Shown here: one piece after another, positions 45,524 to 64,000 of the stretch | How the letters are laid out: every line of letters begins with the position of its first letter | Numbering within the stretch: position 1 is the first letter of the stretch | Source of the DNA: Hyphochytrium catenoides | Taxonomy: Eukaryota; Protista; Hyphochytriomycota | Reading direction: 5' to 3' | Assembly (NCBI GenBank): GCA_900088475.1 | Contig: FLMG01001166.1 | Span: 1 to 64,000, forward strand | DNA: 64,000 nucleotides | Position numbers and translations under genes: made by a program | The notes under the pieces: generated by a model | Database searches by the model: none | The model's input: the letters and a program-made list of their open reading frames with translations, nothing else | Told to the model about the DNA's origin: nothing

Positions 45524-46268
45524 ATGCTCAACGCCGCAACCCCATCTCGCTCCAACGTTTTAGCATCCATCTCTCTACGCTTCCCCTCGGACGGATCAGA
45601 GCCTCCTTTTGCCTCTTCTTCCTATCGTCTCCTCTCTCACCGAAACTGGCTATAGACTCCATTTCTGGCTTTGTTCTTACAGACTCCATTACTTATAAAG
45701 GCAGCTCTCTGTATTATCAAGCCAAAGGGGTTGCCTTATGCTGCTTGGGCCCTTTAACTCATCCGTTTGCCCAGGCTAGACCTACAACCACCTTTGTAGA
45801 GGTACTTTGTGATGCTATGAAGTAATAGCGTGAGAGGGAGGTGCCAAAGTCTGTCTCTCCCTAGCCTCCCAGCCACCCCAATAAGCGATAGTAACTATCC
45901 TAGCAAGACACCAAATTGCCATTGAGCTCCTTTAGGCCATACATTTTATACTGTAGAAGTTCCACCTATGGTGGATCATGGTCTTCCTACACATCACTTG
46001 TCATCAGACAGGAAAGTGTCCCTTTGATTGGCTCAGTCGATTCCAAGTATGAGCCCAGCCTCTATTGGCTTACTGTACATTCGTCGAGAGAATGGTAGGC
46101 GCGTGAAGGAAAACTGAGAGAGTGATGACTGAGAGAATGGTGGTGAACACTGTGATGCAGATGACACAAGAAAAGTCGAGTTTGTTGCAGAAATGTTTGA
46201 AGATATTTTTTAAATTGTGATTGTTTGATTGGTTGTGTGTTTGATCTCATTTATGAGTTCATAGAGTC

Positions 46269-46638: not shown

Positions 46639-47701
46639 AGCCTGATGGTTCGCCGTTCTCCACAATTCTCCCCTGTTCTTCGACATTTTCTCCCCCTTTC
46701 ATCCTTGTTCTTTGTCCATTCTGCCCCAGCGAATGAAACTCCTCATCATCGGAGGAGAGGGTGGTTGTACCAAGTGGGGTACTTGTCCTTTGAGACCAGC
46801 AATAACGCTGTCACTTTATCAGAGGCAGGACATTCTAAGGTAGTAGAACTACTGTAAGTAGATCATTCAGAGCATGCTTTCGTTGCTAGTTTGTTCTTTG
46901 AATAATGCCCCTCACATCTCGCTATTGCGAAGCAGGGCCGAACAGTGATGGTTCCGCAACATGCCCGGCTACGCGTCCAAGTTCATCTTTCGGTACATTT
47001 CGATGGAAAGATTTCGCATCAAACCACAAAAGCCCAATTAGTAGCTGCCATTTGAACCACCGGGCTGAAAGATTTCCAATGGTAGCTTCCTTCATGGTTT
47101 CAGAGGTTGACGTGTGTACAACCCACTTGCACTGTCTGACCCTGTAGTTTTATGAAGGCTGCGGGGAGAGGAGATCATCTGCTGCTGGTACGCGTAGTAC
47201 TAGGTCAGGAGGACAGCGTCAAGCAGCATGTCGGCGTTCTAAATGTTACGGAGTACTACTTTTGGAAGTACCCTGAGGTCTGGGTGTCGCATTGCTAGAT
47301 AATAAGATCCTGCTGGTGTTAAGATTCCGGAGTCCATCAGAGTAAGGGAAGGCTGCAGGCTCTCTGAAACCGCAACCTTGGCATACTTGTCTGGATGTTT
47401 GCAAGCAAATGTGAAGTAGTCGTATTTTAATAGAACTACAGGTGTCCTTTAACCTTTCTAAAGCCCATGCTTTCCATCATATCATCATAACACACCGAGA
47501 GCAGTAATTGCAGAAATCAAACATCATTGATCACAATATTCGACCTTGTTCTCCAGCGTTCACGGGAAAGCGAGGAAGCATTTCGAACTTTATCGACCTT
47601 GGGTCAAAGTCAGAAGCAGCTCATGGATCTTCATCAGCAGCAGTATCTCCTCACTGTCATATTTACAGAACAACAAGCAAGACCAGGAGCTAAGGGTCAA
47701 T

Positions 47702-57194: not shown

Positions 57195-59435
57195 TCAGGA
57201 GGTCGTTGCCGGAGATATTCTCGCCGTGCTTGCCGCAGTCTTTCTAACCGACAAATCTGATGCCGATCGTTGGAAGCTGGTGGCGGGAAGAGTAGTCCGT
57301 ACAAAGCGATCGTAAGGTTGAAGGCACATTCTAAGTACTTCCTCCTCTGGCTTCTCAAAGATAGAAGTGAGAAGCGCTTCGCTCGCTTGATCCAGCTCTC
57401 CGTCATTCTGGCTCTTCAGTTCAGACTTAAAGCTCTTGAGGATTACCTCTCGCAGTTTTGACTCAATATTGATCTCAAAGGGTGCACCTGGTACAAAGCA
57501 GTTAGCTTTCTCAGACGGCAGCTGTTCTCAAAGCATCGTTTGTACGCCTTGATGGTTGGCTGACAAAAGAAGCTAGCTTTGAAAACAGGATGAAGCCGTG
57601 AGGATTGCTCACCTTCTACGATGTAGTCGCTAAGAATTGTCATTGCCTGTTTGAACTTCCTTCGCGAATTCTTCTCTGATCGGAAAGCTTGAACAGCGGT
57701 GTAGAAGAGAATATTTTCAACCTGAAGAAGCAAGCACGAGGGTCAGCAAACGACGGAAAAGTTGTGGTGGAGGCTCCATCGGGAACAGGTGCCGTGAAGA
57801 GCAAGCAGCAAACAAGAAGACCCCTTGCTTTTCTTGGTCAGCAACAAGAAGGCGCGGCCGGAAACGGAAAGACAGTCTTCGGTAGTGACGCTTCTAGCGA
57901 AAGGTTCGTACATCTAATCGTCGCCAATGATGAAAGGACCTAAGGGCGAAGGAAATAGAGAAGAGGAAAGCTACATAATAGAGACCCGAAGCGTGAAGAC
58001 TCACACAGAACTCTCCGATAAGATACTGCTTGAACTGTGCCACGACGTATTGCGACTGGAAAATGTTGCGAAGCTCCGCAGTGTTACTCACTCCCTAATA
58101 ACAGAGAGTACGGGATCGAGAGCGAGGGAAGGGAGGAGATCGATAAGCATCATGGAAGTGCTATCATTGGCATCCTAGACTCTTTGAACGGGTTACCTGA
58201 AAAGTTCCCGCCATCTTCTTTCCCTGACCGGACGAGGGTCCTCCACCGCCGGTGGAAGAAGCTTGTTGCTTCACCAATCGTTCGTCTGCAACTTCATCTT
58301 CATCGCCCTTAAAGCTAATCATGATTGGCACTAAACACCCATACCAAAGATATGACAGTGCAGCGCATGCATACGCAACTTGCCCCATTCCAAAAGCACT
58401 TTGGCGTACACTACCGTTTAGTCCTCCTGCGACAGTAGCCATCGCGTTCAATGGCGTCCCCACTGCAAACCAGTATAGAATCTTCTTCCAATTGCGCTTG
58501 AGATTAAAGGCATCTTTGATGTTTCTCATCAGATAAGCGAAGATGAGGTTTAGAAGGATGATGGTCCACCAGAAGAATGACATAATGATTGCCTTCAGAG
58601 TAGAAGGTTGCCAAGTCAGTGACGAATGTGAAAAGGTAAACGTGCTAGTAGGACGTGAAGGCTGGCTCATGCATTGCTCACCTCAGCGTTTGTTCTCTCG
58701 AGACACGGATAAACAGCGACGACGCTGGTGGTTCCATATCACAAACTACTTCCATCTCCTTCTTCGTCAGGCGACAGAGGAGATGAGGATGACTCCACCT
58801 CTTTGAACACAATGTGGTTCACTGGCTCTGAGATCACCTCTCGGTGGCTGACGAGCTGCAGGATTGGCTGACTGGATAGAATCACACCGATGCCCACCAA
58901 AATCAGCTTGAGCACCTTGTCACTCACCAGGCTGGAGTGCATCGTAAAGATATCACGGGAGCCCTGGGACATGCTTCGCTGCACATTGAACATGTACCAG
59001 TTGCGAAAGAACTGAAGCATTGTTGCCGTAAAGAATGGGTAGACATCTATTGAAGAGACCAGCAGCAGAGGAGAATGCGGGACACGTCAGACGTCACGCA
59101 ATGATAGTTGTTCAGAGGAAACAGGCACTAGGCGACACATTACCGAAGAAGGATATGATATAATGGAGGCCGCAAGACGGTGGGGTCTCTGATATCATCG
59201 TGTGGATGAGGTTTATAATGTAAAGTGATGCTCCTATCTGTGTCGTGAGTGTTAGGAAGACTGGAGTCGAGTTTATCGGGAACTTGGTCCTTCTTCTCCA
59301 AAGCAAGAAGGAAAGGCATGGTATGGCTAAGGAGCTGATGACCAGGATAACGACAGAGACCGTCTGCCATAGCGTCCCGGCGACACTAATGAAGTTATTG
59401 CGAGAGGAAGAGCTTTCTTCCTCCAGCGAGTCCAT
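57195..59435 (-). CDS. 7TM-RGS protein (seven TM helices + RGS GAP domain), with one in-frame TGA at 58741-58739
   Basis: Exons 59435-59144, 59046-58682, 58592-58197, 58094-58005, 57721-57613 and 57487-57195. Seven hydrophobic segments and the loop RNIKDAFNLKR. RGS domain FKQYLIGEFCVENILFY..DYIVEGAPFEINI..IFEKPEEEVLRM..YDRF. Confidence 0.85.
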
Positions 59436-60798
59436 GTCCTGTCTTTGGAAGCGGCACCGTCCCCAGAGCCTTCTTCGTGACCTTGTCCGCGCTCAAGACG
59501 TTCTCTGCCCGTAAGCACACCCTAATATCTTCAGATTCGTCTTCTCTCTTGTGCAGGACAACAGCTTATTATGCCAAGAGTTAGAAGAAGCTTACACTGT
59601 GAAAGAAGGAAGGTAGCGGGCAGCGAAGCGGGTGCGGTGGCAGCTTTGCAATTGGCAGTGAACCAGTCAAGATCAATTACACCTCGCTTCTTCTTCAGCT
59701 CACACTAGTTCGGTCCTCTATTGCTTTGCGACGCAGGGGCTCATGACGGCATTACTAATACTTGTCTAACGATTGCACTGCTACCTCTTCATGTACAGGG
59801 TATCTGTTTATTATTACCTTTGAAAGAGGACATATGTTGGTTTGTCGTTCTGCAGCAGTCCCTAGTCAACAAGTAGAAAGGACATGGTGGATGCAAGGGA
59901 AGGGCATCTGTGCATGCGTCGTCCCAGTGCTTATGAGCTGTTGCACCAATGTCTTCTATCTCAGAAGGCCGAACGGGTGGGCCAAAAATGAAGAACGAGG
60001 AGGCTGCTAAACGAAGACGTCTGCCGGTAAGAGAGCACTCGGTCTTGGACTTAACTTCCCAGGACCGGCAGGGTTGAGAACTCAGCGGCAGTCACACCAG
60101 CAGGGAGGTATGTTGAGGTTTAAAGGGAGCAGGCGACAAACCTCTTCTCTTTAGAAAGGTTGTTCATGTCAACGAAGCTGCTTGAGCACACTGAGAACTA
60201 CTTATCAACTCTTCGAATAGATCCTAGATCCCAAAGACAACCAGTTCCTTCCTCTCTCCTTCTATCTTCTTCTTCCTCTGTTCGCACAGCGAAGCATCGT
60301 CCGGTCGTTACTGCCTGGCTGGAGGGTGCAAAGCCCCTACATGCTTTCCCATGTGCTCATTCTGATGCGTGATGTCGTGACCCTTGCAACACTTCCGCCA
60401 TCGTCATCGTAGAGGTGCCTGAGTATCATGAGGAGGAGGAAGAGGGAGGAGAGACAGCAGGCGGGTTGCTGTGATGCTTGTCAGTAAAATAAATGCTGGG
60501 CTTTGACTCGCGGGCTGTTCCTCTAAGGTTATATTCCTAGGATAGGATAGCTTTATATATAGGGCGGAACCACTAAATGAATTCGTCCAAAAATAGACAG
60601 AGTCTGCGTTTTCAAGGTATTAGCTATGGCATCTGTAGTTCTCGAGGTGGTCCAGGGTGGGTCATGGGACCTCCCTAAAGGAGGGACCTCCCTATGAAAC
60701 TCCCCACATAGTACAACTCGTTTTACAAGGGGGAACCAACCTTTGTCGTTGCTGTTCCTGTTCGTAGTGGATGGGCGTGCACGTATGTACGTGTAGTT

Positions 60799-60900
60799 TG
60801 TGTGTATGGTACTTGTAGGGTTAGGGTTAGGGGTTACGCTTCTGAAAGAGATGGCGCTACTATTACGCGGGCAGTCCGGGGACTGTGTGTATGGTACTTG
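60799..60900. repeat. Interstitial telomere-like (TTAGGG) x~3 between two 17-bp direct repeats
   Basis: TAGGGTTAGGGTTAGGGGTTA at 60816-60836 directly follows TGTGTGTATGGTACTTG (60799-60815), which recurs at 60884-60900. Confidence 0.7.
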
Positions 60901-62033
60901 ATGGTAAGTTCAAACCTACTACAAGTATGGATGCTCCTGCTGCAGTTGTACGGTTGTCTTTATGTTGTCTGTCCTGCTGTTGGTTCCAATCACCATCATC
61001 TACTTAGGAAGTTATTAGCGCTGCTCTGGAGGACATGATGACTGAACATTAGGCCATCGTTGACTTGGACCCACGATGGGATGGAGGAGGGAACATGGGG
61101 GGGAAGGAACAATGGAGGAGGAGGAGGATAAGATGGAAGGAAGAAGGCTAACGCCGATGATGGGTTGCCGCCCTCCACGTGTGGGAGATGTGGAGGCTCT
61201 GGCAGTTGCCGCACTGGACTTTATAAAACTTGCTCGTCCCGTCGACAAGAGGAGAAAGAGAGAGCAGCAAGGAGACGCCAGAGGAGATGGTTGAATGGGA
61301 GAACAACTGCAATACTTCTCTCATGAACTCATGATGCTGCCACCACGCCCTATAATATTAAGTAAATCGTCGTACATACTTAGGAAGGGTAAGAAAGGAG
61401 GCACAGGTGCTGCCATCAATCTTCTTCCGTTGGCTAGACTCTTAGATCTCGGCCGAGACGAGGGGAGAGCATTGGGAAAGAGATCCAAACAGACAAACGA
61501 TAGAAGAAGAGAGTAGCAAGCGGTACCCAGTAGCCTGCCAGCGCCAGTCCGTCTCTCAATATTGTTACCTAAAGGGTGGCTAGCTGTCATAATCGATCTA
61601 TGAGGTTCTGTCTTTCTTTTCTATTATGCAACCCTTGCTCGGCCGTCAATCCTTCTTTCCCTCCTTTCCTCCCCCTCCTGTAGGAGGGCCGTTATCGCCG
61701 TGAACATAATAAAGTTCATCACCTTTGAACGAGACTTGGAACGCAGGAGGAGCTGCTTCGTCAATAGTCTGTTATATTGGCAAGTTACTCTGCTTTGACT
61801 TAGTAATCCTCAAAGCACGTATCATTATTTCAGTCGTACTGTTGCCCTAGGTTGTTGATGAATGAATGTGGAGGTTTTAGTCATCACGCTGGCTCGTCGG
61901 AAAGAAGCAGTTAGTTCTTGCACTATCTCTGTCCTCTAACCTAGGATTTTACCATATCCCAATCTCCCTAGTACCCCATTGTGAACTTTTAGGCCCTCAG
62001 ATTAACTGAGGTCATCAGCTCAGGTGGTGGCTA

Positions 62034-64000
62034 ATGAAGCGAAGCAAGATGAAGCTTCAGATGTGGCTTATGATGCTCTTCTGCTATTACCTGTCTGGAT
62101 ATGACCGTGATATGAGGATGGTGCAAGCTCAGGTTGCCGTGGGAGGTATCTGTAGCTGCATTGGGCGTCAATCACTGAGGGGCCACCTCATAATCTATGG
62201 TGATCCTGACACGTCAACCTACTGGAAAGCAGTCCAGACTGGTTTCCTAGAAGCATCCAAGCGACTCTGCATCCGTGCAGACATTCGGACGGTCCCTGCA
62301 ACGGAGTTTTTCACTAAGTATCAATACTCTGCACGTGATGCACTAAATAGTCGACTGCAAGCATTCCTAAGTGAAGCAAGCCAGTATCCTCCCACTACCG
62401 ACTTCATCGTCACGTCCGCCGTGAATGAATGGCACAGAAGGAGCCGTAGCTGCGCTCCGGAGTGCTGGCTACAAGGTCTTTACTATTGGAAGCTACACCC
62501 CTCAGGGACATCTGCATGTGGGGCAGGATGACTATGACGCTGGCTTCCGCGCGGGAACACGTTGCGGCCAGGACCAGGCGCTGGATAATCTTTGCATCAT
62601 CCATCAAGGGGCCAATCCGGTCTTTGTGGAACGATGTCGAGGCTTTCAAGATGGAGTCAAGAAAGCATGCACAAAGTGCAAAGCCCGGGTTGTGATGGTT
62701 AACAATGATAATATGGAAGAAGCTATCATCACTATCCGCGAAGCTGCGACAGTGAACACGACAGGCTTCTTCGTCCTCTCTGACACAATGTCTCAACCAT
62801 TGAAACGAGCTGTCCAGGGTCTGCCGACACCAAAGACTCCCTTCATCTTGGGGTCCTGTGACCTTTTGGAGAACAATCGCAAACTTCTCCGAGAGAAGCA
62901 ACTAAGCTTTGTCGCCGACCAGCAGCCATATCTCAAGGTTACATAGCAACCATGACTGCAGTGCAATTCATGTGGACTGGGAACAAGCCCGTAAATCGAT
63001 ATATCAATACGGGCTCCTATCTTGTCAATGCGATTGTCAGGACGAAGAGATGCTAAAGCAAAGCGAAGTCCGCCTCCGCATCGTTCTCAGCGGGCGAGAT
63101 ACGAGTCAATTCTGGCAAGTAGTCAAGAGTGGCTTTCGTGAGGCTGCTGCAGATACTGGCCTTGAGTACAAAGACTGCAATAACCAAACGGTCGTCTGTA
63201 ATGCCACCGACGGACTGCAATACCGCGCACCTGCGGGAACTTTTGACGTTGGAATGGCGAACAGTTTCCTGGATGATCTGGTCGTGGAGAAAGCCAATGG
63301 TATCGTCCTCACTGTTGCTAATAGTGAAGCAATGGCAGACTCAATCTTAAACGCGGACAAGGCTGGGTAAAGATGTTGACCTTCAATTCGTGGCAGACGG
63401 CACGGGCAGACATTGGCGTGAATTTTGCCACTCATATTGGTCAGGACGAATGTGTGGCGGGTTTCATGATGGGAGAGCGCCTAAGAACATTGGGCTTTAG
63501 ATCCATCCTTTTTCTCAACTCACAAGTAGGCAATATTGGAACGGACCTTCGGTTGGGAGGGTTGAACGCAGCTTTCAATGGCAGTGGCATCAGCGTCCAT
63601 ATAGCCAAAGTAGCATCTGACAACATCCCAGCGTCGTACAAAGCAATGGACGATGTCTTTGCTCTCGGTACTTCTCCCCCAATTGACTGCATGATTGCCA
63701 TTGGTTCCTTTACCGCACACGCCGTGAAGTACGTAACCACCAATAGTACATCTGGTTCGGTTGCCTCGCAGTCCAAGGTCGTTAACTTCGATGTGAACGA
63801 GCAAATATTGGCGATGATACAAGCGGGCAACGTTGCGTTCTCCATCAACCAGCAACAGTATCTCCAGGGGTATTTGCCAATCGTTCTCATGCACCTCCTT
63901 CTGGTCTCTGGGCAGCAGTTGAGGGAGCCACTTATCCTCACGGGCCCCAGCATCGTTGATTTGAGCAACATTAACAATCACTGCATGGGCTACCTCTGTC
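62034..64000 (+). pseudogene. Secreted tandem type-I periplasmic sugar-binding-protein (Peripla_BP_4-like) domain gene; 4 frameshifts; runs off the window
   Basis: Signal-peptide-like start. Repeat 1: TYWKAVQTGFLEAS..HVGQDDYDAGFRAG..ERCRGF..FVADQQPYLQGY..INTG. Repeat 2: FWQVVKSGFREAA..HIGQDECVAGFMMG..FSINQQQYLQGYLP..ILTGPSIV. Frame breaks at about 62427 (GAAT duplication), 62933, 63030 and 63367. Confidence 0.8.

Follow-up and report, generated by a model that had tools for sequence, protein, structure and literature searches.

A head-to-head pair of a 7TM-RGS gene and a probable sugar-receptor pseudogene in Hyphochytrium catenoides

A divergent gene pair on contig C603

The stretch of DNA analyzed here (the window) comprises bases 1-64000 of the 128 kb contig C603 from the draft genome of Hyphochytrium catenoides (61 Mb in 4,759 contigs). 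Toward its end lie two genes in head-to-head orientation, a minus-strand gene (59435 to 57195) for a seven-transmembrane protein with a C-terminal regulator of G protein signaling domain (7TM-RGS) and a plus-strand gene for a receptor with sugar-binding domains that starts at 62034 and runs beyond the window edge. Between the two divergent start codons lie 2,598 bp of intergenic sequence (59436-62033), in which no tRNA or tandem repeat was found. With a chance judged somewhat better than even, the locus is read as two separate receptor genes, a live 7TM-RGS gene and a dead, lineage-restricted sugar receptor, inherited from a duplicated two-gene block.

The minus-strand 7TM-RGS gene

Three-frame reading resolved the minus-strand gene into six exons (59435-59144, 59046-~58799, ~58592-58197, 58094-58005, 57721-57613, and 57487-57198) separated by five GT-AG introns, from an ATG at 59435 to a stop codon at 57195-57197. 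The product has 475-521 amino acids, the length being set by the choice of the exon 2/3 junction, and every plausible junction leaves an open frame. The splice-junction peptides read continuously in intron-poor paralogs (junctions marked by a slash: ISFF/DVYPFF versus ISLGDYFPFF, EFC/VENILF versus EFCVENILF, and VEG/APFEINI versus EGSPYEINI). No lesion was found in three-frame reading of all junctions or in the joined models, and the apparent breaks in the gene were ruled out as lesions, being the five canonical introns.

Transmembrane segments of both genes were assigned by a Kyte-Doolittle-type hydropathy scan. In the joined RGS model, this gave seven hydrophobic segments (residues 26-44, 59-77, 88-106, 145-163, 183-201, 218-236, and 256-274) followed by the RGS domain, bearing out the original prediction of a spliced 7TM-RGS gene with its start at 59435. 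With about 22 residues ahead of the first helix, the protein has almost no ectodomain.

The RGS domain is spread over exons 4-6 (57198-58094, minus strand) and is cut by two introns. The gene was searched against Pfam exon by exon, the joined model being used only for the hydropathy scan and pairwise alignment, and exon 5 was the sole exon with an RGS match (E 0.0016, 19.3 bits), which lies below the cut-off of 23.9 bits (PF00615). This score is weak because the two introns cut the domain, and the RGS assignment is based instead on collinearity with paralogs that score 39 to 49 bits. In a local pairwise alignment, the joined model is collinear with the paralog on C3277 from the fifth transmembrane segment (TM5) through the whole of the RGS domain (E 6e-59); the RGS domain scores 46.3 bits in this paralog and 39 bits in the partner gene on C2397. 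The window domain retains the motifs ENILF and EINI, which we take to hold the counterparts of the E87/N88 and N128 contact residues of RGS4.

The 7TM-RGS family is expanded here: of the RGS matches in the genome, which number at least 71, at least 17 are loci of this family. G-alpha genes (PF00503) are encoded on C3226 (364.7 bits), C2421, and C4706. Its gene model makes the minus-strand gene an intact member of this large family, with six exons. Relatives of the family were returned neither by a word-based search with the C3277 paralog nor by a search of PDB sequences with the C2397 RGS exon, and the RGS query gave only one weak match in the metagenome scan (E 0.002; obtained with the TM5-7 exon, on L105). 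Judging from AtRGS1 and the 7TM-RGS proteins of protists, the product would most likely act as a membrane-bound GTPase-accelerating protein that keeps G-alpha off until a signal relieves it.

The plus-strand sugar-binding receptor gene

The part of the plus-strand gene that lies in the window (62034-64000) encodes a hydrophobic N-terminus resembling a signal peptide, followed by two Peripla_BP_4 domains (PF13407; cut-off 35.1 bits), in agreement with the gene that had been predicted about 2.6 kb from the 7TM-RGS start. The first domain (62151-62943) is broken by frameshifts and aligns in two frames to residues 107-402 of the intact C2397 open frame; its larger piece scores 32.9 bits, below the cut-off, whereas the same domain reaches 60.7 bits in that paralog. 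The second domain (63053-63957) carries one frameshift near 63364 and aligns to C2397 residues 410-700, with 56.4 bits for its C-terminal and 25.1 bits for its N-terminal piece. A sequence search identified CUT2 monosaccharide-binding proteins as the nearest solved relatives of the C2397 ectodomain (top match 4ru1, E 8.8e-21).

The frame open at 63328 runs on past the window edge to 64554 and takes in an LNR module (Pfam Notch, E 2.4e-4) and a Cys-rich region. It is followed by more coding blocks, in which at least eight hydrophobic segments are found up to ~66.54 kb, and the last open frame stops near 66.76 kb on the contig. This membrane part is made up of several blocks in different frames that are collinear with the C2397 paralog. 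The gene had been described as secreted and intronless, and neither term was borne out by a reading of the contig beyond 64000. Given the LNR module, Cys-rich stalk, and membrane segments downstream of the binding domains, the plus-strand gene is read as a complete gene for a self-contained multi-pass solute receptor with its own membrane domain, and not for a secreted binder.

The membrane module matches no Pfam family, and phmmer with that of the C90 paralog found nothing among PDB sequences. No match to 7tm_3 (PF00003), genuine loci of which number ~18 elsewhere in the genome, was obtained with the membrane pieces of the window gene or with the single-exon C90 paralog, and a class C seven-transmembrane identity of the module was ruled out on this ground. 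The neighbors in a protein atlas are multi-pass proteins of the Ephrin_rec_like/TRP-C-terminal type, which is noted as a lead only with regard to a possible kinship with CRMP-type receptors.

Six loci make up the receptor family in this genome (C603, C2397, C90, C1473, C778, and C1723). A full HMMER search with the C90 paralog found no family member outside the genome, the best matches being 7tm_3, histidine kinase, protein kinase, or LNR-only proteins. A word-based protein search with the C2397 ectodomain returned only one bacterial tandem binding protein, in an ABC operon, and the 80 loci of the metagenome scan were LNR-only, none having sugar-binding domains or the membrane module. As judged from these searches, the family that joins two CUT2-type sugar-binding domains, one LNR, a Cys-rich stalk, and a multi-pass membrane domain is lineage-restricted.

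Frameshifts in the window receptor

Compared with the intact paralogs on C2397, C90, and C1473, the window receptor has at least five frame changes inside continuous homology. The first is a tandem GAAT GAAT at 62424-62431 that leaves no room for an intron. The second and third, at ~62930 and 63027-63047 (within 62925-63047), fall where the conserved motif QQPYL-QGY and the lobe after it occupy three frames, against a single frame in the paralogs. The fourth, at ~63364 (63360-63370), lies in a short G run inside the second sugar-binding domain, and at the fifth (64549-64556, beyond the window) the frame again changes relative to the paralogs. An intron-sized gap fits at none of the five sites.

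These five shifts fall within ~2.5 kb, compared with none in ~10 kb of paralogous open frames (839 amino acids in C2397, and 908, 891, and 848) and no frame break in the 1.5 kb RGS coding sequence located 2.6 kb away. As neither the RGS gene next to it nor the coding sequence of the paralogs shows such shifts, the window copy of the receptor is read as probably a pseudogene. The original prediction had both partners lesioned, which it saw as fitting the joint loss of one module; the lesions are real for the receptor, whereas the 7TM-RGS gene has five GT-AG introns and is intact, so that only one of the two genes is broken and joint loss is not what the locus records.

Past the window and downstream of the receptor pseudogene, a multi-exon gene at C603:69625-71500 (L002:7625-9500) encodes a long Glu/Lys/Leu-rich, coiled-coil-like protein.

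Recurrence of the pair on contig C2397

The same head-to-head arrangement was identified on C2397 (C2397:40900-49100; L003, L004), with a minus-strand receptor starting at 46109 and a plus-strand 7TM-RGS gene starting at 47511, 1.4 kb apart. The C2397 receptor holds both sugar-binding domains and the LNR in one 839-amino-acid open frame, its membrane blocks are collinear with those of the window gene, and the three-exon model of its 7TM-RGS neighbor is open with GT-AG introns. This pair is apparently intact and is better suited to experiments than the pair in the window.

Between the two pairs, protein identity is ~33% for the receptor ectodomain and ~45% for TM5-7 of the 7TM-RGS protein, and both RGS genes have an intron at the same position, between EFC/EFA and VEN. 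A tblastx comparison of 42 kb around the window pair with 35 kb around the C2397 pair confined homology to these two genes, with flanks that are not paralogous. As homology ends at the two genes, either the pair itself was the duplicated unit or only the pair survived rearrangement. The two spacers share no motif beyond CT/GA low-complexity runs.

Among the six receptor loci, two are paired with an RGS gene (C603 and C2397), two are clearly unpaired (C778 and C1723, with no RGS gene in at least 7 kb upstream), and two are cut by contig ends (C90 and C1473). The ectodomain tree of the six separates C603, C2397, and C1473 from C90, C778, and C1723 (94/96).

Contig ends at C1473:11067-11866 and C90:12112-12911 match C4044:733-1460 and C3874:782-1616, respectively (90% identity over 750-800 bases). 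Their position at assembly breaks suggests unresolved haplotypes or recent duplications, which bears on the trust to be placed in single-copy calls. Neither C3874 nor C4044 is among the RGS matches listed.

RGS genes beside other receptors

Two further loci of the genome bring RGS domains together with receptors. At C1638:25334-29365 (L116:2334-6365), a 1,131-amino-acid open frame with a PBP_like_2 ectodomain and a 7tm_3 domain is followed by a 168-base stretch bounded by GTAAGT...CAG and then by an in-frame RGS domain (49 bits). Judged by this organization, the gene probably encodes a single-chain protein of binding domain, 7TM, and RGS domain. Relatives of the C1638 protein elsewhere combine PBP_like_2 with 7tm_3, and no RGS is recorded for them (P0152). 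At C788:5086-8199 (L117:3086-6199), a plus-strand 7tm_3 gene (94.7 bits) and a minus-strand RGS gene (40.2 bits) lie tail-to-tail, ~360 bases apart. Such adjacencies are regarded as real, though indirect, evidence for an association of RGS proteins with solute receptors in H. catenoides.

Origin and possible function of the arrangement

The adjacency of the two genes appears to be non-random, but a duplicated two-gene block explains it adequately. One old duplication of such a block would have given rise to both the window pair and the intact C2397 pair, a common promoter region may have kept the block together, and in the window the RGS gene would have outlived its receptor neighbor. The RGS gene is intact beside a dead neighbor and is therefore taken to be independent of it. 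The original prediction had also raised, as its weaker idea, that the adjacency is not due to chance, and this gains support from the intact pair of the same families on C2397 with its unrelated flanks and from the RGS domains beside or fused to receptors on C788 and C1638. By their position, functional coupling of the 7TM-RGS protein and the sugar receptor is possible.

Several observations weigh against inheritance from one duplicated block, or against the view of the window receptor as dead. The RGS tree places the two paired genes in different well-supported clades (98/94); as they fall on opposite sides of this split, a single co-duplication would have to be old, near the base of the RGS family. 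The two pairs may instead reflect two independent juxtapositions, which would argue for selection on the arrangement. Four receptor-RGS adjacencies were seen (C603, C2397, C1638, and C788) compared with ~0.3 expected by chance, as estimated from ~24 receptor loci, 72 RGS loci, and 5 kb on each side in the 61 Mb genome (Poisson P ~3e-4, or ~3e-3 with the two paralogous pairs counted once), which speaks for a functional link. The count of pairings is itself limited, the C90 and C1473 contigs ending 3.5 and 2.4 kb upstream of the receptor gene, respectively. Lastly, as a minority alternative, the five frameshifts may be local assembly errors, two of them being at short homopolymers.

If the frame changes were all errors of the draft assembly, the window receptor would be alive and the window would hold a second intact pair. 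The fragmentation of the assembly into 4,759 contigs, the 90%-identical stretches on separate contigs that hint at unresolved haplotypes, the location of two shifts at short C or G runs, and the good alignment of the segments between shifts with the paralogs are all in keeping with this. It is nevertheless considered improbable: errors would have to cluster five times in ~2.5 kb and spare both the paralogs and the neighboring RGS gene, one shift consists of a tandemly duplicated 4-base unit, as real slippage mutations typically produce, and no second copy of the window stretch exists in the assembly. The pair has also been envisaged as a split receptor, in which a secreted tandem sugar-binding protein docks on the 7TM-RGS protein as a bacterial binding protein does on a chemoreceptor. 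The genes are adjacent and divergent, and systems of a binding protein plus a transducer exist in bacteria, but this form of the original prediction is now very improbable, as reading past 64000 revealed the receptor's own multi-pass C-terminus: the window gene, like its paralogs, runs on into an LNR, a Cys-rich stalk, and at least eight membrane segments. LNR and/or membrane blocks follow the binding domains at five of the six Peripla_BP_4 loci (for the C1473 copy, the downstream sequence showed no membrane block), and none of the six lies on a contig with a 7tm_3 match.

A functional two-gene sensing cassette is a stronger contender, although still rather unlikely. Here the genes would share a bidirectional promoter and one pathway, ligand bound by the receptor would modulate the ectodomain-less 7TM-RGS protein and thereby G-alpha, and what the window contains would be a duplicate of the cassette undergoing decay. 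Consistent with this, the same head-to-head pair is intact on C2397 despite ~33-45% protein identity and unrelated flanks; both paired receptors belong to a single clade of the ectodomain tree (94/96), whose third member, C1473, is cut by a contig end; RGS genes are enriched beside receptor genes; the 7TM-RGS protein lacks an ectodomain of its own; and the apparent single chain of PBP-type ectodomain, class C 7TM, and RGS on C1638, with its consensus GTAAGT...CAG intron, offers a Rosetta-stone hint. Conversely, no such partner was seen at four of the six receptor loci or at 15 of the 17 listed 7TM-RGS loci, the window RGS gene is intact next to a dead neighbor, the receptor has a large membrane domain and needs no partner to reach the membrane, the two spacers have no motif in common, and the C1638 fusion is built from different PBP and 7TM families. 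More doubtful again is the fuller proposal that a conserved bidirectional cassette links extracellular sugar sensing to the switching-off of G-alpha, as the unfused counterpart of the C1638 single-chain gene. Two separate receptor genes from a duplicated block, one alive and one dead, are accordingly retained as the favored account of the window.

How 7TM-RGS proteins sense signals is still unclear, even for AtRGS1. Were a functional link true, the recurring association of ectodomain-less 7TM-RGS genes with ligand-binding receptors would provide a testable route of signal input, as would a fusion of the C1638 type. The immediate value of the analysis lies in a corrected annotation and in better targets, namely the intact C2397 pair and the C1638 gene.

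Comparison with known systems

Proteins of 7TM-RGS architecture occur in many protist lineages, and RGS families are often expanded (PMC3971589), and in plants 7TM-RGS works as a GTPase-accelerating receptor (PMC3718340). The window protein resembles AtRGS1 and the protist 7TM-RGS proteins of Trichomonas, Naegleria, and many bikonts, as well as those of plants, at the level of architecture: the same seven helices and C-terminal RGS domain, a very short N-terminus, and a G-alpha gene in the genome (PMC3718340; PMC3971589; PMC9283941). It differs in family size, with at least 17 7TM-RGS loci here compared with one in plants, and in contrast to AtRGS1 nothing here points to glucose as the ligand.

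The receptor shares with class C GPCRs a type-I periplasmic-binding-protein fold outside the membrane on a multi-pass receptor, but the window receptor and its paralogs are without a 7tm_3 match and have 8-9 hydrophobic segments instead of seven. In eukaryote-like sequences from elsewhere, one Peripla_BP_4 domain or a tandem of them, in some cases accompanied by LNR, is joined directly to 7tm_3 (P0002, P0005, P0078, P0115, and P0068). The Peripla_BP_4 fusions listed (P0002, P0005, P0016, P0068, P0078, P0115, and P0141) carry 7tm_3, a histidine kinase, or a cyclase-like region plus a protein kinase, and from these varied outputs the binding module appears to be a widely reused sensor head.

Compared by description, the CRMP-type receptors of apicomplexans and ciliates likewise combine a large ectodomain, modular and rich in Cys, with a membrane core of nine passes, for which a GPCR-like nature has been proposed (PMC9670195). 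We know of no CRMP with bacterial sugar-binding domains or located beside RGS genes.

Among bacterial sequences, an ENA metagenome contig (L028:10001-12073; P0001) encodes a 690-amino-acid protein with two tandem Peripla_BP_4 domains and 29% identity to the C2397 ectodomain. Its gene sits in an ABC-transporter operon beside TPP-enzyme, AP_endonuc_2, and GFO_IDH genes, which was read as inositol-catabolism-like, and by sequence likeness P0001 may serve as a model of where the eukaryotic tandem module came from and of the class of ligand it binds. In the bacterial sensing systems of the Trg and Tar chemoreceptors, on which sugar-binding proteins dock, and of LuxP-LuxQ, a type-I binding protein passes ligand occupancy to a separate membrane transducer; in the receptor family described here, by contrast, there is no free binding protein, and the binding domains are covalently part of the membrane protein itself.

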